Source: Cyanophora paradoxa CCMP329
Lineage: Eukaryota > Plantae > Glaucophyta
Reading direction: 5' to 3'
Assembly (NCBI GenBank): GCA_004431415.1
Contig: QPMI01000085.1
Coordinates: forward strand, 1 to 64,000
Length of the DNA: 64,000 bases
Below, in pieces: positions 13,259 to 60,056 of this stretch. The notes beneath the pieces are model-generated. The model was not told where the DNA came from. It ran no database searches and worked only from the letters and a program-made list of their open reading frames with translations. Position 1 is the stretch's first letter. Every line of letters begins with the position of its first letter. The position numbers and the translations under genes are program-made.

Positions 13259-14661
13259 ATGGCCGGACGCGGTATCTCTGTGCTCGTCACGTCGTCTTTC
13301 GCCACGCGCTGCCGCCCGCCGGCAGTCGACCTTGCGCTACTTGCCGCCCGGCGGATCCCAGCTCCTTTGCGGATGCAGTCGCTGAGCGGGATCGGAGCAC
13401 CGCAGCGCGTGCATGCGGTCAGTACGTTCTGTTGAGAGCGGATCGATGTCCTGCGCTGACTCCGCGAAGCGCATTGGCGCGCCGCTTGGTCGGCGCAGCT
13501 TCGCGGGCGGCAGCGGCGGCATTCCCACGCCCGTTGATGCAGTGGAGGCATTCATTCGTGCAGGGCACGAAGTTGTGGGCCTTCCCTGGTGGCTCGCCAT
13601 CGCGGGTCTGGCGCTGTTTCATCTACATTGCTTTTCGCCACAGCATACCGTTTGTCGATGGTGATTTCGAAATGCGATCGCAGGGTCCGCTTTGGCTGTC
13701 CGGCTCGCATTTCTTCCACTCGTTCTGTACAGCAGGAGGGTTTCAGCACGTTATTCGTCCCTGAAACCACATAGGCAGCTGGCTTTTGCACTAGCTACAT
13801 CCTCGGCAAAGGAGAAAAGGTTTGCAGTGTTGAAGCATCCCAACCCGGATCTGAAATGCTGCGAATCATTCAGAGAACAGTATCTGGATTACGTTCGAGC
13901 CGTCTGGATTCAGTGCTCATTGTTCGATTCAAACCCCCTGAAGGCCTTGGTCGCCCCCCTTGCTATGATCCCCGTCTTCATAAGCTTTGCTTGGGCGATG
14001 AGGCGGATGGCGATTCCTGGCTCTGGGATGGAATTGGGTGGCATTCTCTGGTTCGAGGACCTTACACTCCCAGATGTTCACTTTCCTGGAATCATGTCAC
14101 TGGCGATCATCAATTGTGCAATTGTTCTTGCCAACCTTGTGGTGAGCAGCATCGTTCCTGAGATACCGTTCAGGAGTTGTTTTTGTACTCATAGAACGAC
14201 CAGGTATCATTTCGAACCACCGATCGCTCACTTCTATATGTGAAAGACATTTGCATGGTCCTAGTTGTTGCTATGACATGCTTCACTGCACAGCTTCCTC
14301 AGGTGCGATTCCTCCCATTATCAGAACATGATTTTGCATCGTATATGAAACGCCATGCAGGGATTTTTCATGTATTGGATACCATCTTCACTATTTGCAC
14401 TGGTCACCACACTGCTTACCAGGCATCCATTGATGCAGGAAAGGTGAACTCAAAATTACTGTTTGAGCGATTTAAATCTCATTGAGCTTCACTGCAAGGT
14501 TGCTTCGGAGTGCATGGGCAGGGCGAAAGCTGCCTCCACCCGTGCAGGACTTCTTTGAAGATGTTGCTCGGCAGCCAACAGAACATGCTGCAAGGGCTTC
14601 GGGAGGAGATGGTCCCCTTATACCCTCGGAGCCACAAAAACCGAAGGTACCCGTGCAGTGA
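13259..14661 (+). CDS. Oxa1/COX18 (YidC family) membrane insertase
   Basis: GLPWWLAIAG, PVFISFAWAMRRM, GGILWFEDLTLPD, FFMYWIPSS motifs; N-terminus resembles a mitochondrial presequence. Confidence 0.9.
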
Positions 14662-15236
14662 GAGGTTCGCACGCTTGCACACGGGTGCTCATCATTTGCT
14701 GAAGCTTTGATCTGCTGCTCACCCTTCGCCCGTGCAGGCGCTCCTCTGAAGGGAGGCTCGTGATTTCGATTTCGATCTCGGAGCTTTTCGATTTCGATCT
14801 CGGAGCTTTTCGATTTCGATCTCGGAGCTTTTCGATTTCAATCTGACCCCTTAGCGCCCCTGGTGCAGGCTGACTCCATGTGGGGTTCCCAGAGCCCGTA
14901 GGGGCTCCCACCACCGCCCCAAGACGACCCCTGCCGCGACAAGACGTGATGCCGCACTCGCCGTGCGGGCACCTAGGCCTGTAGCGAGCTACAGTGCTCG
15001 TAGGGAGGCGTTTGATATAAGGGCCGGTCCGGACTCTATGATTGCTAGGGCGCGCGGTGTGGAAAGGGCTGTGGGGCAAGGGGAAGCAGTTTGGAGAAGG
15101 GGGCCCCGGATCGGGAGGGGGGCACAACATGGAATTCGAAATCTCAATTGCAAGCTAGGGTGGATTCGGTACGTAATTAAAGTTGCATTTGCGCGAATTG
15201 CATGCATATGTGGCACAATTGCATTTAATATTTAAG

Positions 15237-15314
15237 CTCTTTCTAAGCGACGGGCGCGCCGGACCTCCTACCTACAGCGCTTTAACTGTACCCGTGCTGT
15301 TTGGGTGAGAGCGT
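15237..15314 (-). mobile_element. Truncated Fanzor right end (omegaRNA 3' part), 78 bp
   Basis: Matches 34178-34255 except one substitution; starts at the same CTCTTTCTAAG terminus. Confidence 0.9.
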
Positions 15315-17287: not shown

Positions 17288-17807
17288 CTCTTTCTAAGCT
17301 ACGGGCGCGCCGGACCTCCTACCTACAGCGCTTTAACTGTACCCGTGCTGTTTGGGTGAGAGCGTAACCCGCAGGGACTGGTGCCCTGATGGAGAAAAGG
17401 GGATGGGAGCCTAGCCTAGCTACGAGCCGAGCAGGCGCTTCGCGTCCACGCCCGTGCCGTAGCGGATGAAGATGCTCCTGCAAGAGTACGATTACGATTG
17501 CGATCGGGCGGCGCTGGGAGGGCGAGCCGGCCCTAGGCCTAGACGGAAAATTACGCCGTGGCTGGGCCGTGTCGGGACTAGGCGGGGGGAGCAGCGATTG
17601 TGTATAGGCGTGTATAGACACAACACGCACCGCGCGGCGCCGCCGTCGCGGTCCGCCCGGAAGCCGCACCCGGGGCGGCACTCGAAGACCCTCTTCGAGC
17701 CGAGCCCGTAGTTGATCTTGCCGCACAGGCCAAAATCTCCAGGCCAAATTAGATGGGGGGGGAGGGGAAGGCTCAGATGAGCATGTCTTCTCGTCAGCGG
17801 GCAGACG
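17288..17807 (-). mobile_element. Non-autonomous, internally deleted Fanzor element with both ends
   Basis: 17288-17727 near-identical to 34178-34617 (omegaRNA plus last Fanzor codons); 17739-17807 shared with 56932-57001; followed by CTTAAGC. Confidence 0.9.
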
Positions 17808-17939
17808 CTTAAGCGACTCATCCCCCTGTATGGGCGACTCATAGGAATGCAGCCCTCGCTGTTGCCGACCTGGCCCCGATCGCGAAGCTTGCGAGGGGAG
17901 TGAGCATCATGGCATTTGGACACATACTAAAAACGCAAG

Positions 17940-18370
17940 TCGGGGCTACAGGTGCGTGTGGGGTGTACGATTAGGGGTTGCACGGGAAGCTGCGGACCCA
18001 GCCCACATGCGCATATGCATGCACCAGCAATATTAATTGCAAGCTGGCCAGCCGGGCCCCCTACAACGCTAGCTGAGGAGAGTAATGCACCTAGGCGTCC
18101 CCGCGGACACTGTACAATGCTATACGGTACTACGGTATCTAGCTAGCTACATGTGTGCAACGTGCCGACGTCTTGTGGCGGCGGGTCCCGGGGGTCGGGA
18201 CATCATCTCGAGGTGGTACCGGTGGCGGGAGCCCATATGCATACGGGCCGCGGGCCCCGCCCTTCGAATTCAAGACCCTGAGGCTTGGGGCCCTACATGT
18301 ACATGGAGTCAGCATTAATTGCGGCATGCCCCAGGGGGCCCAGTGCGAAAAGGGGTCACTGAGTCAGATC
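17940..18370 (+). repeat. Diverged dispersed repeat, related to about 10600-10850 and (inverted) 14870-14957
   Basis: Shared blocks GGAGAGTAATGC, CTAGCTAGCTAC, ACGTCTTGT.GCGGC, GGGAGCCC, CATGGAGTCAGC, AAGGGGTCA. Confidence 0.6.
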
Positions 18371-34177: not shown

Positions 34178-34381
34178 CTCTTTCTAAGCTACGGGCGCGC
34201 CGGACCTCCTACCTACAGCGCTTTAACTGTACCCGTGCTGTTTGGGTGAGAGCGTAACCCGCAGGGACTGGTGCCCTGATGGAGAAAAGGGGATGGGAGC
34301 CTAGCCTAGCTACGAGCCGAGCAGGCGCTTCGCGTCCACGCCCGTGCCGTAGCGGATGAAGATGCTCCTGCAAGAGTACGA
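34178..34381 (-). ncRNA. Predicted Fanzor omegaRNA scaffold (element right end); the guide would be read from flank below 34178
   Basis: Directly 3' of the Fanzor stop; conserved in multiple copies with a sharp common boundary; complementary segments GCTACGGGCG / CGCCCGT..CCGTAGC, TACAG/CTGTA, CAGGG/CCCTG. Confidence 0.75.
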
Positions 34382-37300
34382 TTACGATCGCGATCGGGCG
34401 GCGCTGGGAGGGCGAGCCGGCCCTAGGCCTAGACGGAAAATTACGCCGTGGCTGGGCCGTGTCGGGACTAGGCGGGGGGAGCAGCGATTGTGTATAGGCG
34501 TGTATAGACACAACACGCACCGCGCGGCGCCGCCGTCGCGGTCCGCCCGGAAGCCGCACCCGGGGCGGCACTCGAAGACCCTCTTCGAGCCGAGCCCGTA
34601 GTTGATCTTGCCGCACACCCCGCACGTCTTCGAGGTCCAGGCCTCGCAGACGAGCTGGAGCGTGCACGGCGGGTCCTCGTCCTTGGGGTGCCGCCGGACG
34701 GCGTGCTGCATGAGCTGCCGGAACCTGCGCAAAATAAGCATCAAGACCGCGTGGCAGAGGGGGTCGAAACGCAAGACCAGCGTACTCGTAGTGGCGGCAG
34801 TCGAGAGCCTGACGCGCCACCCACGGGAGCATCGCCCGCCCCTTGCGGGCGACCTGCAGGGGAAAGTGAGCGGAATTCCCGGGGCGGGCGCGCCGACAGA
34901 GCTCGCCAACCATCTGGCTGGTGCGGAACTCCGGCGCAATGACCATCCGAGCGTGCCCCGCGAGAAAACTACGTCGCGCGCCGTGCGTGGTTACAAAGAG
35001 TACAGGATTCAGTGATCGGGGCCGCGCACCGAACCCAGCGCCGAATGACCTCCGTCGCCTGGTTGCGCATGCGCGCGTAGCGCCGACGCCCCAGCGCCCG
35101 GAGGTGCCGGCGCGTGCCGTGGCGCGCTGCGCAGAGGGCTCAGCCGCGGAGGGCGCCAAAAAGACCGAAGGGCGGGGGCGCACGGTAGGTCCGCTCTGGC
35201 TTGCCGTAGTAGAGGCTGGGGCAGGGGCAGGCGGGCCGCGGCTCGGCGCGCAAGCCTCTTCTGAAGGTCGGGGGGGCCGACGGCGGCGGCTGCTCGGCGG
35301 CGTGCAGGCCCCTCTCGCCAGGCGCCAGACTCTTCGCCTGTAGCTCCAGCTTCTTCGCCCAGTAGGCCGCCTCCCGTCTCGCCCGATCGGCATCGTGCTG
35401 CCGCATGCGTTCCTCCCTGCGCTCCTTCGCCGCCTCGGAGCCGCGCGGGGGGCGCGGGGGCGGCGGAACGAGGGGCGGCGAGCGGCGCCGCAGAAACCCC
35501 CGGGGGCCCCTGTTGGGCTCCGAGACGCGAGAGGCCCCCCGCGGCGGGGCCCGTGCAGGGGGCGGCGGGGCGGCGGCAGCGGCGGCAGCAAGCGAGGCAC
35601 GAAAATCTTCGAGCGTGCCCTTGCGGGAGTGCGCCCGGTAGCATTTTCCGCACAGCCCTGCTCGCGCACTATCGTCAAAACTGCATCGTAGGCAGGACGA
35701 GGAAAAAGGATCGAGCACCATGGGAATGGTGCGGGGCCTCCTTGTGCGGGCAGTTCACGTTCTTCGAAAATAGCGTTCTCGCCTCCCGCTCGAGGGCCTC
35801 CTTCTCCCCCGCCCGCACAGCGGCCTGCCGGCTCTTCCGCCGCTTCTTCCGCCCCCTCCGCTGCTTGTTACGCCGCCGCCTCCGCCCGGGAGACTGCCAA
35901 CCTCGCACGCCACCACTGCGCCGCCGTCGCTGCTGCTGCTGCTGCAGCTGCTGCTGCTCCCACACGCGGGCATCATCGGAGGCAGCAGGCTGTTGCCGGT
36001 GCTGATGCTGCCGCTGCTGCCGCCGGAGCCGCCGCAGCGCCACACCCGCCTCCTTCGACGACTTGGCCATCGCCTGCTCCGCCCGGCGCAGCTGAGCGTA
36101 CCGCCTGCGGTGCTCCTCGGGCGCAACCTGGGATACGGCGGGACCGTCAATTAACCGAGCCCCATACGGCAGCAACGAGGAGAACCACAGGGAGAGAACC
36201 TTGACGATGATGCCAAGGCTTGGGACGAAGGCCGTCCAGACGGTCTTCACGCCGGGGTCGATGACGACGAGGTCCCACTTCAGCCGGCGGGCCATCTCGT
36301 CCGCAAGAGCCCTCACCGCCCCCGTGCGGTGGCACGTCTTGCTCGCGGCTCGCGTCTCGTTCACGTCGCGGGGGACGCAGAATCTGCGGGCAGCGTCACG
36401 GACGGGGGGAGGCGAAACCGGCGAACCGTGAATAATTCAAAAGGGGGGCGCACCGAATGCCCCCGTCGGGCCCCATCGCGAGCCTCGAGTCGTGGGGGAT
36501 CTTGCCGGGGAGCTTCTTGTAGTCGTGCACCCGCACCATCGTCTCGTCCCTGAGGACCGCCCAGTGCGGCCGCGTGGAGTACTTGCCGGTGCCCGCGCCG
36601 TTGTAGCTCGTCGCTGGAACGATGATGGACAGCCGCCGCGCCTTGACGGAGACCCTCGCCCTGTGGCGACGGGGTGAATCGATAGCGACGGCCCGGGCCA
36701 AAAGGGGACGCGCACTGGAGGCCCTCAAGCGGGTTCCGCCGGGCGACCTGGTTGAGGACCGCGGAGAGCGCCTCCTCGGCTGCCACCGACAGGGTCTTGC
36801 CAAAGACCCTCCACGTCGGGACGATGTCGGCGCACCCCAGCAGACTCCGCTGCGCCGGGTCGAGGCCGTACAGCCAGCGCTCGCGGATGTCGCGCATCGC
36901 CTCGGGCGCGAGGGGCAGCGGCCTCTTCTCCGCCTCTGCGCGCGGCAGCTGCCCCCCCCCCTGGCACCCCTCCCACTCCTGAAGGCACCCGCTTGGTACG
37001 AGGCGCGAGCGACAAGGCGTACCACACAAGGGAGGCGCACCAGGTCCTCGATCTCGTCATCGGAAGGCTGGTTGACGTAGATCGTGCGGATCAACCCCTG
37101 GAGATCACCGCGCCGCCTCTTCAGCATGCCACCGCGCATGCCCGCCGTCCCCATTACCAGCTTGTTCAGCTGCGCGGCCCCCAGCGCGTGAGAGGGAGCG
37201 CCCGAGGCGGGAGCCAGAGGCGAGCACCTCGGGCTCGTGGATGCAGCCGTTCACCACGGCGTCGTACACGAACGCGGCCGCGTTCATCTCGCCCTTGATC

Positions 37301-38913: not shown

Positions 38914-39914
38914 GCAGGACGAAAGTTGGACGAAAGTTGGACGAAAGTCGGACGAAAGTTGGACGAAAGTCGGACGAAAGTTGGACGAAAGTCGGACGAA
39001 AGTTGGACGCAAGTCGGACGAAAGTCGGACGAAAGTTGGACGAAAGTTGGACGAAAGTCGGACGAAAGTTGGGCGAAAGTTTCTGATTCCGATCGTAACC
39101 GCAACTCTGATTCCGATCGTAATCGCAATGTGCCGTCGTAATCGCAATGTGATTCCGATCGTAACCGCAACTCTGATTCCGATCGTAATTCTGATCTACT
39201 TGATCTAGATCTAGATTTGGACATGGTCTTTGGTTCTTTCTGAGCTTCCTTGCTCGCCCAGTAGGGCACACCTCACACCTTCTTTGGAAGCCCTTTATTC
39301 TCACACCTGCAGAACCAAAAAAATCTATATCTAGCTAACAGGCACGAAAGAAGGCCTCTCGCGTTCTCCACTCTTTACACGCGGGTGGTGTACCCGTACA
39401 CGCGGGGGGGGGGGGGGGCAGGACGAAAGTTGGACGAAAGTTGGACGAAAGTTGGACGAAAGTTGGACGAAAGTCGGACGAAAGTTGGACGAAAGTCGGA
39501 CGAAAGTTGGACGAAAGTCGGACGAAAGTTGGACGCAAGTCGGACGAAAGTCGGACGAAAGTTGGACGAAAGTCGGACGAAAGTTGGGCGAAAGTTTCTG
39601 ATTCCGATCGTAACCGCAACTCTGATTCCGATCGTAATCGCAATGTGCCGTCGTAATCGCAATGTGATTCCGATCGTAACCGCAACTCTGATTCCGATCG
39701 TAATTCTGATCTACTTGATCTAGATCTAGATTTGGACATGGTCTTTGGTTCTTTCTGAGCTTCCTTGCTCGCCCAGTAGGGCACACCTCACACCTTCTTT
39801 GGAAGCCCTTTATTCTCACACCTGCAGAACCAAAAAAATCTATATCTAGCTAACAGGCACGAAAGAAGGCCTCTCGCGTTCTCCACTCTTTACACGCGGG
39901 TGGTGTACCCGTAC
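38914..39914. repeat. About 500-bp tandem duplication containing an 11-bp minisatellite (GGACGAAAGTY), CTGATTCCGATCGTAA repeats and the last exon/3' UTR of the 7-TM gene
   Basis: 38914-39399 is near-identical to 39419-39914. Confidence 0.9.
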
Positions 39915-45000: not shown

Positions 45001-47581
45001 GGCGGCAGCGGAGCCGGGTGCGTTGGCGGAGCCGCGCGTCCGACTGCGCGGAGTCGAGTCGAGTTGTGCGTCGTGCGCTGTGGGCGTGAGCTCAGGCGAG
45101 CCGCGCATGCGCGGGTGGCATGCGTTGGCGGGAAGGCGGGCGGAGCGAGGACGGGAGCTTAAACGAGCGTATGCTGGCTCTAGATGTTGTGTGGCGTCTC
45201 TCGGGCGCGCTCGGAGTGGCAGGAGAAGGCGGCGGGGACCGGCCCGTTTAAACACGTTACCGCGGGAGCTGGCGCGAGTCGCGGCGCCAACAGGGGCGCA
45301 GCTGCTCTTCTAGATGTCTGTGGTGTCGCTGCGGCTGTCGTTGCCCGCCCGGCGGACCTACTTTGCGTGTTCGGGCCGTGCTGGTCGTTGGGCGTCGGCG
45401 CCGCGAGTTTTGGGACCGGCCACGTGTAGTGCTAGCAGGCACCCTCGTTGGGGAAGCCCCACTGCGCCGGCTTACTCGCTCGCGGGCCTTCGCGCAATTT
45501 CCGCGGTCGCTGAAGCTGTACATATGTTCCTCGAGCTCGAGACCATGCATGTGTAAACGCGTCCCTCGTCTGAGTTGTCTCCCTGATCGTCTCGCGTGCG
45601 CTTGCGCCGCGTTCGCTTCATGAGCTCGACGAGAGGCTCGAGATCTTATTAACCTATATTATATCGCTATATAGCTAGCTATACTATGATATAGCGCTGT
45701 AGACACCAAGCCTTTGGCGAAGGGCCACATGTCGATCAGACAGAGCAACACAATCTGGATCGATCTGGATCTCGATTTCGATTTTTATTTCGATTTCTAT
45801 CTGCCAGGCTGAATATGCATATTCATATGCCTTTTCCGAAGTTCCCCGTTACTGCCAGTATTAGTGTTACTGCCCCATGGCCTAGCAACACATGGCCAAG
45901 GATCCCGGAGTCCGGAGCCCGGTCGGAGCCCCAGCCATGGACCCCCCACAACGTTAACAGCTCCGCAGTTCCTACACCCCACACCCACACTTGCGCATGC
46001 CGCCCAGCTCCCCGGGCCCGGGCCCACGGACAAATGCATTGCGATAAAGTTCGTGACTCTATGTTCTCAACCCCGCACAGCCCTCTCTCAAATCAAAGTC
46101 CATCACTCTCTCAATCTCTCAAATCTCAATCAAATCTCAAATGAGATACAGATTCCACTCAATGGCCGCGATCAGCCTCAGGCTCGGAGTCTGGATCGGC
46201 AGGGAGAGACTGGACTGCTTGGCAAGCTTCAGTCTGGATTTCCTGGGCCCGTTTCTCCTTGTACGAAGGGCGGGACAGTTTTGATGACGACGTGCCTGCC
46301 CCAATTGTCTGCTCCCGATTCTGCTTCACGTGAAATTCCTGCCGAGAACGCCACTGCACGACGCATCATGAATTCAGGGTTCAGGGGATTGCAATCATGA
46401 CCACAGGGTACCTTTGCTTGGGGCACCAGACCCTCTTGCTTATAGAACCCAACAGTGTACTCCCTGCTCGAGAATCATTACAGGGCGTCATTCAAATGAA
46501 AGGGAAATACACACCGTGGCGGCATTATGTGCTCGTCATGGAGAGTGAGTGTACCCTTCCGCAAAGAACCCAACCGGGTTTCAAGGGGGCACTCAAGAGC
46601 TGGCCGCTCGTTGCGCCGATTCCTCCCATCACTTTCCATGACCACCCGTTTTCGCGTAAGTTGCAACTCCGATTCAGCGGAGAGCGAGAATGTTTGCTCA
46701 AAATGTCTGCGACCGGGGGCCTTTTGGGGGAACTATGTTAGAGCATTGTGCAAACGAGCTAGATGAAATTGAGCTAAGAAAGACGAGCTTTGCGGGGGCT
46801 CTTATTAGCTTGCATTTGCTCGTAAGCTGGCTGGGCTTTACCTTGTCAGTTTCCAGCCGTAGGGGCTCTTGAACGCGGGCCACACCCGAGACGCGTTCGT
46901 GTCTCTGCTCGCTCTTGGGCGCTATTCTCACGCTCGAGCGCCAGACGGCGCCGGTCGTCGGCATGCCCACATTTGCACCGTCGAGGGCGGGTTGCCTCGG
47001 CGGCGAGAAGTGCCTTCGTTGCGCGTGCGCGTAGTCGGCGGAACTCGGCAGTCCCGGAACTCGGCGCTTCGTACCGCCGAGGCTCCAGGCTGGGCCCGCC
47101 CTCTCCACCGCGCCGGCGGACAGCTCCTCCAGCATCTCGAACGCTAGCTCTAGCTCTAGCTCTAGGAAATGCGGACGTCGACAAGCTGGCCAGCTGTGTT
47201 GTAGACAAAAAGGTCGAGCTGCGTCACTGGTGTGTCAGCGGCCAACGGCTGTAGCTAGCACATTGAGAACACGGGCATACAGCTGCGGACGACGCAAGAG
47301 CTAGAAAGGGCGGTGCTACCTACGGGGCTAGATGTTGCGGACAAAGCAGCAGGGCCCTCTGAAGCGGCTTTCGCCAACGACGGCTTTGGCTAGCGCTCTT
47401 TTTTTTCAAAGCTGAAGGGTATTGTAATTTCAGCGGCCTGCGCCCGGCCTTCGAAGCGGCCTAATCGCTTCCCTCCGCTTTCAACAGACTCGAACAGAAC
47501 AATACGCTGGCTGACCCGCACAGTCGAGTCCCGCCGCGCCTGCCCGCCGGGCCGGCAGGGAAGCAGCCTTCGTCCTCCCCG

Positions 47582-55921: not shown

Positions 55922-56207
55922 TCAAAACGGTCCCCACCCTAGCCCTGCATTTCCAACCTCTTGTCCAACAACCCCGGCCCACCCCCCCAAGTCTTGACCG
56001 TAATCGTAATTCTGGGGCGGCTTCCAGTGGCCCCATGTTCGACGCGACGGAGAACAAGGGGTTAGGAAGCATTTGGATACGTACTGAAAACGCTACTCCG
56101 GGCTACAACTGCAAGTGCGTGATATACACTGCGGCCGCCGCGACCGGAGAACAATGGGTTAGGAAGCGCGTGACGGAGAGTAAATTTGTATCTCTCGATG
56201 AGTGGTG

Positions 56208-57001
56208 CTCTTTCTAAGCTACGGGCGCGCCGGACCTCCTACCTACAGCGCTTTAACTGTACCCGTGCTGTTTGGGTGAGAGCGTAACCCGCAGGGACTG
56301 GTGCCCTGATGGAGAAAAGGGGATGGGAGCCTAGCCTAGCTACGAGCCGAGCAGGCGCTTCGCGTCCACGCCCGTGCCGTAGCGGATGAAGATGCTCCTG
56401 CAAGAGTACGATTACGATTGCGATCGGGCGGCGCTGGGAGGGCGAGCCCGCCCTAGACGGAAAATAACGCCGTGGCTGGGCCGTGTCGGGACTAGGCGTG
56501 GCATCCCTGCATGGCGTTTCATATACGATGCAAAATCATGTTCTGATAATGGGAGGAATCGCACCTGAGGAAGCTGTGCAGTGAAGCATGTCATAGCAAC
56601 AACTAGGACCATGCAAATGTCTTTCACATATAGAAGTGAGCGATCGGTGGTTCGAAATGATACCTGGTCGTTCTATGAGTACAAAAACAACTCCTGAACG
56701 GTATCTCAGGAACGATGCTGCTCACCACAAGGTTGGCAAGAACAATTGCACAATTGATGATCGCCAGTGACATGATTCCAGGAAAGTGAACATCTGGGAG
56801 TGTAAGGTCCTCGAACCAGAGAATGCCACCCAATTCCATCCCAGAGCCCTCAAGATCCCTGTGAGTGGTGCGTCACTCGTTCCCGATTTGATTCCAGTGG
56901 TGGGCGAGGGCCCAGGGGCGGAGAGTTCATGCCAGGCCAAAATTAGATGGGGGGGGAGGGGAAGGCTCAGATGAGCATGTCTTCTCGTCAGCGGGCAGAC
57001 G
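56208..57001 (-). mobile_element. Non-autonomous Fanzor element carrying a 346-bp piece of the Oxa1 gene
   Basis: 56208-56498 = Fanzor right end; 56503-56848 = reverse complement of 14019-14364; 56932-57001 = left end shared with 17739-17807; followed by CTTAAGC. Confidence 0.92.
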
Positions 57002-57012
57002 CTTAAGCATAT

Positions 57013-59468: not shown

Positions 59469-60056
59469 TCATCGGGAGGTCATTGGACTTTTGAGACTTT
59501 TTTGGCAAGATGCAGCCCGCACTCTTTGAGCGTCATGATTGGCCGCAGTTGTAGTTGTACCAGCGCTGCGTTCGGTGGAGGCTGACTGCGACCTTAGGGT
59601 CATCAGGTCATCTTCCGCACAGATGTGTGTGCGGGCTATAGAATGACCCTTATCCCGATGGCTATGAATGACCCTGGCTGGCAATCGATGCCTCACCTCA
59701 CTGAACATTATTTCGCTGTGGTCCGCCCGAACCTTGAGAGACTGCTTATCGCCCTGGACAGTCTTTACTCTTTCTAAGCTACGGGCGCGCCGGACCTCCT
59801 ACCTACAGCGCTTTAACTGTACCCGTGCTGTTTGGGTGAGAGCGTAACCCGCAGGGACTGGTGCCCTGATGGAGAAAAGGGGATGGGAGCTAAACAGTCT
59901 TCGTTCTAAACCACCTCACTGAGTCAGGCCTGAGAAGGCTTTTGAACATGAACGAATTTCCCAGCCCATACATGCGATTCGCAAGTGCAAATACGACAAG
60001 TGCAGCGGCGTCTTTCCTTCCGAAGACTGCCTACAACTTCCGAGTTCCCGCATCAT
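59469..60056 (-). pseudogene. Small hypothetical gene whose exon is interrupted by a Fanzor end fragment
   Basis: Removing the insert and one ACAGTCTT copy restores an open frame (SPDSVRWFRTKTVQGDKQSLKVRADHSEIMFSE) bounded by GT/AG sites. Confidence 0.4.
59768..59890 (-). mobile_element. Truncated Fanzor right end, 123 bp
   Basis: Identical to 34178-34300; flanked by ACAGTCTT direct repeats. Confidence 0.92.

Follow-up and report, generated by a model that had tools for sequence, protein, structure and literature searches.

Internally deleted copies of a Fanzor2 transposon family in a Cyanophora paradoxa subtelomere, and a tentative AG-directed model of their insertion

Two short elements near a chromosome end of Cyanophora paradoxa, copies A and B, are independent, internally deleted, non-autonomous copies of one Fanzor2 transposon family, and we regard them as ordinary deletion derivatives. 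The window, by which we mean the whole 64,000-nucleotide stretch that was analysed, also holds a long copy with a multi-exon nuclease gene and two bare 3′ tails. Our favoured reading, to which we give a probability of roughly 45%, is that the insertion of this family is directed by AG, that the window copies arose mostly by a one-ended copy-and-paste process, and that the (GC)TTAAG in front of copies A and B is host sequence. The features on which the argument turns are collected in Table 1.

Table 1. Coordinates of family members and associated motifs in the window (a slash marks a junction)
Feature	Position	Strand	Basis or remark
Copy A, internally deleted non-autonomous Fanzor2 element	17288..17807	-	alignment; tblastn of annotated tail proteins
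GCTTAAG directly 5′ of copy A	17808..17814	-	target/TAM context or first 7 nt of the element
78-nt 3′ module, as placed in copy A	17288..17365	-	
Copy B	56208..57001	-	window sequence comparison
GCTTAAG directly 5′ of copy B	57002..57008	-	
Filler inside copy B	56503..56848	-	100% identical to window 14019-14364 (+)
Long copy, multi-exon Fanzor2 gene, same right end	34178..~38808	-	
Tail T15237, last 78 nt only	15237..15314	-	left junction ...CCCGAAG/ACGCTC
Tail T59768, last 122-123 nt	59768..59890	-	100% identical to copies A and B
5′ copy of the 12-nt repeat flanking T59768 (AAGACTGTTTAG)	59890..59901	-	ends in AG at the junction
3′ copy of the repeat flanking T59768 (AAGACTGTCCAG)	59754..59765	-	

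The window opens with 5.6 kb of (CCCTAA)n containing scattered variant units (1-5590). It is the first 64 kb behind a telomere, i.e. a chromosome end, and is wholly subtelomeric. The (CCCTAA)n unit is also the telomere unit of vertebrates, but no other feature hints at human DNA. After the telomere array the subtelomere is repeat-rich, with 51-69% G+C, and the coding matches of the window are EukProt gene models (tig..._g....t1) at 88-91% identity. An isolated fragment was also seen: 38 nt at 7910-7947 (+) match exactly the 3′ end of the last Fanzor intron together with the opening bases of the last exon, in unrelated context and with a tandem duplication of about 60 nt (7780-7900) just before them.

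The right boundary of the family is exact, because five window copies stop at the same base and then diverge. A 23-mer from the right end has five occurrences in the window, all on the minus strand (15237, 17288, 34178, 56208 and 59768), and in the alignment all five copies are identical through ...GCTTAGAAAGAG and unrelated from the next base onward (first flank bases C, T, C, C and T). The family thus finishes in ...GAAAGAG, with AG as its last dinucleotide. The 78-nt 3′ module is the minimal part found in 5/5 copies and is presumed to be the 3′ part of a putative guide-RNA (omegaRNA) scaffold; Rfam returned no match for the right-end module, and its RNA fold was no better than that of shuffles (z = +0.51). 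Two other explanations could be discarded. Homing by repair from a common right flank is ruled out by the five unrelated right flanks, and a piggyBac-like TTAA duplication is ruled out because the right flanks are without TTAA.

In copy A, a left end of about 87 nt is followed directly by the final 440 nt of the family, which are 99.8% identical to 34178-34617 in the long copy. It keeps the zinc-finger/RuvC-III exon (including the RuvC-III aspartate), the last intron, the last exon and the 3′ non-coding tail, and the intron is confirmed by tblastn against annotated gene models of other contigs. Since copy A retains this intron, the copies are DNA-derived, and retroposed mRNA is ruled out as their source. 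Copy B is more composite, with a left end of about 77 nt, 83 nt of unassigned sequence, 346 nt of filler and the last 294 nt of the family. Judged from its sequence, the 346-nt insert looks like filler captured in copying or repair rather than a carried gene; the identical locus lies 42 kb away in the same window, and a more distant copy (88%) is found at 11325-11439. At their right ends, copies A and B have about 294-300 nt in common. The flanks of the two copies have nothing in common but a 39-nt dispersed repeat some 100 nt away, and A and B are therefore different loci. This repeat (80-87% identity) is seen at 17912-17950, 56069-56107 and 10581-10619, and thus lies within about 100-140 nt of copy A and copy B alike. 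Across neither copy were direct repeats of ≥5 nt found, and the left and right ends show no similarity above chance in either orientation (1307/2000 and 1844/2000 shuffles reached the same score).

The nuclease of the long copy is, by its sequence matches, of the Fanzor2 (IS607-lineage) type. This assignment follows from three matches: the last large ORF of the long copy matches PF07282 (3.8e-9), the closest solved structure is the mimivirus L79 Fanzor2 (PDB 9b0l, E 5.8e-6), and the closest viral loci are 11 giant-virus Fanzor2 loci at 34-40% identity. Among these loci are ones on giant-virus contigs of 330,611, 344,691 and 368,683 bp, lengths that match those of the chloroviruses PBCV-1, AR158 and NY2A. 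In the 17 ORFs of the long copy and upstream of it no serine-recombinase domain was found; PF07282 was the only Pfam match. Upstream of the long copy there is no left end of the type seen in A and B. The N-terminus of one annotated tail protein on another contig (P0004) matches a tandem-repeat array at 39082-39138 and 39597-39653 (minus strand), just upstream of the long copy; the array may therefore be part of the element, with the long copy reaching past 38808. Further upstream, a minus-strand TTAAG (45158-45162) was seen 10.98 kb from the right end of the long copy. Nothing related to the A/B left end follows this TTAAG (26% of controls reach as high a score), and the GC-rich block upstream of the long copy stops closer to 45.6 kb.

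In contrast to the five right ends, left ends are few. A 23-mer from the left end occurs exactly twice in the window (17785-17807 and 56979-57001, minus strand), with 0 occurrences expected by chance, and the left block common to A and B (17738-17814 and 56932-57008) has 76/77 identity and begins with GCTTAAG. Further left ends were sought in the window with up to three mismatches to the 23-mer and by BLAST at word size 9, and none was found; the left end had 0 matches in a metagenome scan, the window holds no empty paralogous sites, and the DNA fold of the left end is at chance level (z = -0.32). Both left flanks finish in AG, as does the right end. The first-pass annotation had reported that A and B have both ends in common, that they lack terminal inverted repeats (TIR) and long target-site duplications (TSD), and that AG stands at both junctions. 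We reach the same description. Its caveat that GCTTAAG could itself be element sequence is equally sound: with n=2 left ends, the boundary may fall anywhere in the common 7-mer. The 7-mer offers six dinucleotide positions, so that a register matching AG is expected about 1 time in 3. As to the claim that the empty sites contain CTTAAG, it is true of the reconstructed sites, but it is true by construction only. Two further features of the left end are that GCTTAAGC forms an 8-bp palindrome across the proposed A/B junction, and that GCTTA recurs 12 nt from the right end.

Additional left junctions are provided by the two bare tails, neither of which is preceded by anything resembling the left end of A and B. 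T15237 has no flanking repeat. Its right flank starts with CTTAA (15232-15236), the reverse complement of TTAAG, abutting the right end; this may be a coincidence (about 1% by our own estimate). T59768 has the left junction ...GTTTAG/CTCCC, in which one G is ambiguous, as the element also has a G there. The register of the junction is nevertheless fixed, because a 12-nt repeat flanking this tail ends exactly at it. The two copies of the repeat agree at 10/12 positions, and two extra bases, TA (59766-59767), lie between the right end of the tail and the 3′ copy. The chance of such an in-register repeat is 0.0019 per pseudo-insertion in the window, and that of its perfect 8-mer core is 0.0013; a flanking repeat is present in 1/2 tails only, and with two mismatches.

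Taken over all readable left junctions (A, B, T15237 and T59768), AG ends the flank in 4/4 cases, against an AG background of 0.062, a regularity that was noticed post hoc, among many features, and that we discount accordingly. From these junction sequences, AG is probably a real insertion target, because both tails also join after AG and the repeat flanking T59768 ends there. Even when discounted, the regularity raises our estimate for the boundary of A and B, and we now think it likely that their true left junction is G/C, which would make (GC)TTAAG host sequence. If AG belongs to the flank, then so does the GCTTA before it. Five identical bases at two independent sites would arise by chance about 1 time in 1000, so an extended target or a TAM-type constraint is needed, and such a constraint would hold for the copies that bear a left end and not for the tails.

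The extended motif bears on the TAM of the nuclease. For IS605 and IS607 TnpB and some Fanzors, the left end is bordered by the TAM, and the right end has to be different from that motif. In IS607 elements, TAM and right end finish in the same two bases, and the discriminating position is -3 (TGGG vs CGG). In the window, GCTTAAG stands at 2/2 left ends and the right end finishes in AAGAG, where n=2 and the motif may be element sequence; by analogy, TTAAG versus AAGAG would mirror the IS607 arrangement of TAM and right end. Eukaryotic Fanzors are known with A/T-rich TAMs (TTTA, TA, TTA), and the viral TAM is GGG. Our tentative prediction, at slightly below even odds, is that the nuclease uses TTAAG or the 3′ part of it as its TAM. 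Depletion of CTTAAG/TTAAG as a sign of self-targeting was considered and dropped: a deficit relative to dinucleotide shuffles was gone under a corrected model (telomere removed, order-3), with 8 observed vs 7.7 expected.

In the favoured reading, the single exact 3′ end would carry the putative guide-RNA scaffold, and the differing flank after each copy would serve as the guide. Copies would insert in one orientation, directly 3′ of AG; those bearing a left end would have TTAAG, while the tails without one would need AG only. The enzyme moving the family would act in trans. Most window copies would be products of one-ended copy-and-paste, in which the 3′ end is retained, the 5′ part is truncated or deleted, the target is duplicated in some cases and filler DNA is taken up. 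We favour this model because it accommodates the five right vs two left ends, the tails, the internal deletions, the filler, the repeat flanking T59768 and the AG junctions together. The two bases TA that follow T59768 on its right might, speculatively, have been carried over from a parent resembling copy A, whose flank starts with TA. No transposase, HUH or other, could be tied to the family.

The other readings differ mainly in how they treat the imbalance of ends and the common 7-mer. The first-pass annotation had proposed an IS607-like mechanism with an AG crossover and a (GC)TTAAG TAM. Spelled out, a serine recombinase would excise the element as a double-stranded circle and exchange strands, without TSD, at a 2-bp AG core found both in the target and where right and left end meet in the circle; the nuclease would re-cut the empty donor joint with TTAAG as its TAM. 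IS607 TnpA performs a conservative double-strand exchange at a matching dinucleotide, for which both ends are required and from which no duplication results. The absence of TIR and TSD in A and B and the AG at both of their junctions are as such an exchange would leave them, the nuclease is indeed of the Fanzor2/IS607 lineage, as the annotation assumed, and the closest viral relatives show the same pattern with TA at the left start and the right end in at least five copies. TTAAG versus AAGAG would likewise fit the position -3 discrimination seen in IS607 systems. Yoon et al. propose that insertion at the dinucleotide is promiscuous and that sites with a TAM are then retained, a scheme that would account for TTAAG at the excisable A and B and for mere AG at the tails. 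Yet there are five right ends to two left ones, and a conservative two-ended exchange cannot yield tails. T59768 has a 12-nt target duplication with two extra bases, the AG match falls within a 7-mer that would supply one about a third of the time, and no serine recombinase was found in the long copy or its upstream ORFs. Serine recombination at internal AG pseudo-sites was tried as a source of the tails and rejected, as the element bases before the break points include no AG in a register that fits the junctions. The tails alone do not exclude an IS607-type partner, because the closest viral relatives also have short tail-bearing elements; it is the end imbalance, the truncated tails, the target duplication and the filler together, none of them products of conservative exchange, that leave serine-recombinase exchange unsupported. 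We consider this mechanism distinctly unlikely, and the annotation as a whole is partly supported. A variant would keep the IS607 logic, with an AG core and a five-base TTAAG TAM, and add a replicative pathway that scatters bare guide-RNA tails. Insertion would then need only AG, excisable copies would persist at TTAAG sites alone, where the nuclease can re-cut the empty joint, and each scattered tail would gain a new flank as its guide. We hold this combination to be improbable.

If the element instead began with GCTTAAG as its own first 7 nt, possibly a terminal motif that recurs as GCTTAG close to the right end in the manner of Replitrons, the left flanks of A and B would end in TC and AT with no conserved flank motif, and neither TAM nor crossover could be read from them. 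Default parsimony assigns sequence common to two copies to the element, the recurrence of GCTTA near the right end has a chance of about 5% by our own estimate, and the palindrome GCTTAAGC spans the proposed junction, although a reading as a GCTTAGC-type palindrome is inapplicable. The warning that site-specific targets and element termini are indistinguishable without de novo insertions (Craig 2023) applies here as well. Against these points, the element would then have no motif abutting its left end, unlike every characterised TnpB/Fanzor element. Both tails also join their flank after AG (chance about 0.06 for each), and both copies of the repeat flanking T59768 finish in AG. We regard an element-borne GCTTAAG as unlikely. 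Finally, the tails and deleted copies could be debris of subtelomeric rearrangement, produced by deletion and end-joining capture, with the AG and the repeat coincidental. The window is subtelomeric and repeat-rich, and end joining typically leaves filler DNA and microhomologies; but random deletion would not spare the exact right end in 5/5 copies while losing only the 5′ side, and the repeat flanking T59768 is in register with the junctions. Such an origin is very improbable.

Among known systems, the giant-virus IS607-type Fanzor2 elements (ISvNY2A_1, ISvAR158_1 and ISvMimi; Bao & Jurka 2013; Yoon et al. 2023; Jiang et al. 2023) carry a nuclease of the same lineage. As in these elements, copies A and B are without TIR and TSD, and the putative guide-RNA scaffold lies at the exact right end. 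In each case the dinucleotide at the left junction equals that at the right end, being TA in the viral relatives, GG in mimivirus and bacteria, and AG here. In the viral Fanzor2 elements, of about 1.46 kb, the alignable sequence opens with TA (TATCGACA...) and finishes with TA (...AACTTA), in varied flanks, across NY2A-sized, PBCV-1-sized and metagenomic copies. Such ends were seen in six viral loci (L003, L006, L010, L008, L001 and L004; about 4990-5000 and 6440-6455), which fits a TA core. Two short elements on the 344,691-bp giant-virus contig (L005:7103-7262 and L009:11682-11852) have only the right-end tail of the viral Fanzor2, about 160 nt; both have the same differing 5′ part, and their right flanks are different. 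Unlike the giant-virus elements, the family described here has a large multi-exon gene, truncated and TSD-flanked tails and no serine recombinase that we could find, and its proposed AG core with a 5-7 nt A/T-rich flank motif differs from the GG with (T/N)GGG of IS607 types.

Close parallels to the behaviour of the family are found in another alga. CRe-1/2/3 of Chlamydomonas reinhardtii, a Fanzor1-carrying non-autonomous Helitron2, show 5′ truncation and internal deletions, while their 3′ ends stay intact; where the consensus 5′ end is present, the copy follows TTTT without TSD, and truncated copies have TSDs of 7-19 bp and captured sequence (PMC3627910). The Cyanophora family resembles CRe in its overabundance of 3′ ends, its 5′ truncation, its internal deletions and its TSD on a truncated copy only (here two full-ended copies, two tails and one TSD). 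It differs in that the nuclease is a Fanzor2 here and a Fanzor1 there, in that CRe has asymmetric terminal inverted repeats and hairpins at both ends where we find none above chance, and in that TTTT, the CRe motif, is found upstream of the 5′ TSD, while in the Cyanophora family it is the repeat that finishes in AG. Replitron-1, also from C. reinhardtii, has a fixed orientation of insertion, immediately 3′ of RG; its TSDs are variable and take in the RG, and its right end is fuzzy, with a few bases copied from the flank of the parent, consistent with copy-and-paste (PMC10288648). For comparison with Replitron-1 and Replitron-N1, the family has AG at 4/4 left junctions, and a TSD and a 2-nt extra are seen in one copy only. 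Replitrons differ in having 6-bp direct terminal repeats and a Rep HUH protein and in lacking a Fanzor. Under the AG boundary no terminal direct repeat is found here, and only GCTTA repeats if the 7-mer is counted as element; Replitron Rep proteins are reported absent from glaucophytes. IS200/IS605 elements (TnpA-Y1 plus TnpB) insert 3′ of a 4-5 nt motif that doubles as the TAM, lack TIR and TSD and have their guide in the right flank, much as is proposed for this family. They differ in their subterminal hairpins at both ends and their Y1 transposase, of which we found none here, and have not been reported in eukaryotes.

In the literature we found no joint mention of Fanzor and Cyanophora, and works that mention both Fanzor and glaucophytes are without such elements. 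Nothing in the window is surprising enough to alter current views ahead of genome-wide or bench data. The family behaves like the Fanzor-carrying elements of Chlamydomonas, with an exact 3′ end, ragged 5′ ends and occasional target duplication, and it adds a second algal lineage to an unexplained pattern that Craig (2023) tentatively tied to Fanzor cleavage. If the motif in front of copies A and B is a true TAM, it would offer a prediction ready to be tested for a large, intron-rich algal Fanzor2 as an RNA-guided nuclease, and an AG/TTAAG type would join the GG and TA types known in the lineage.
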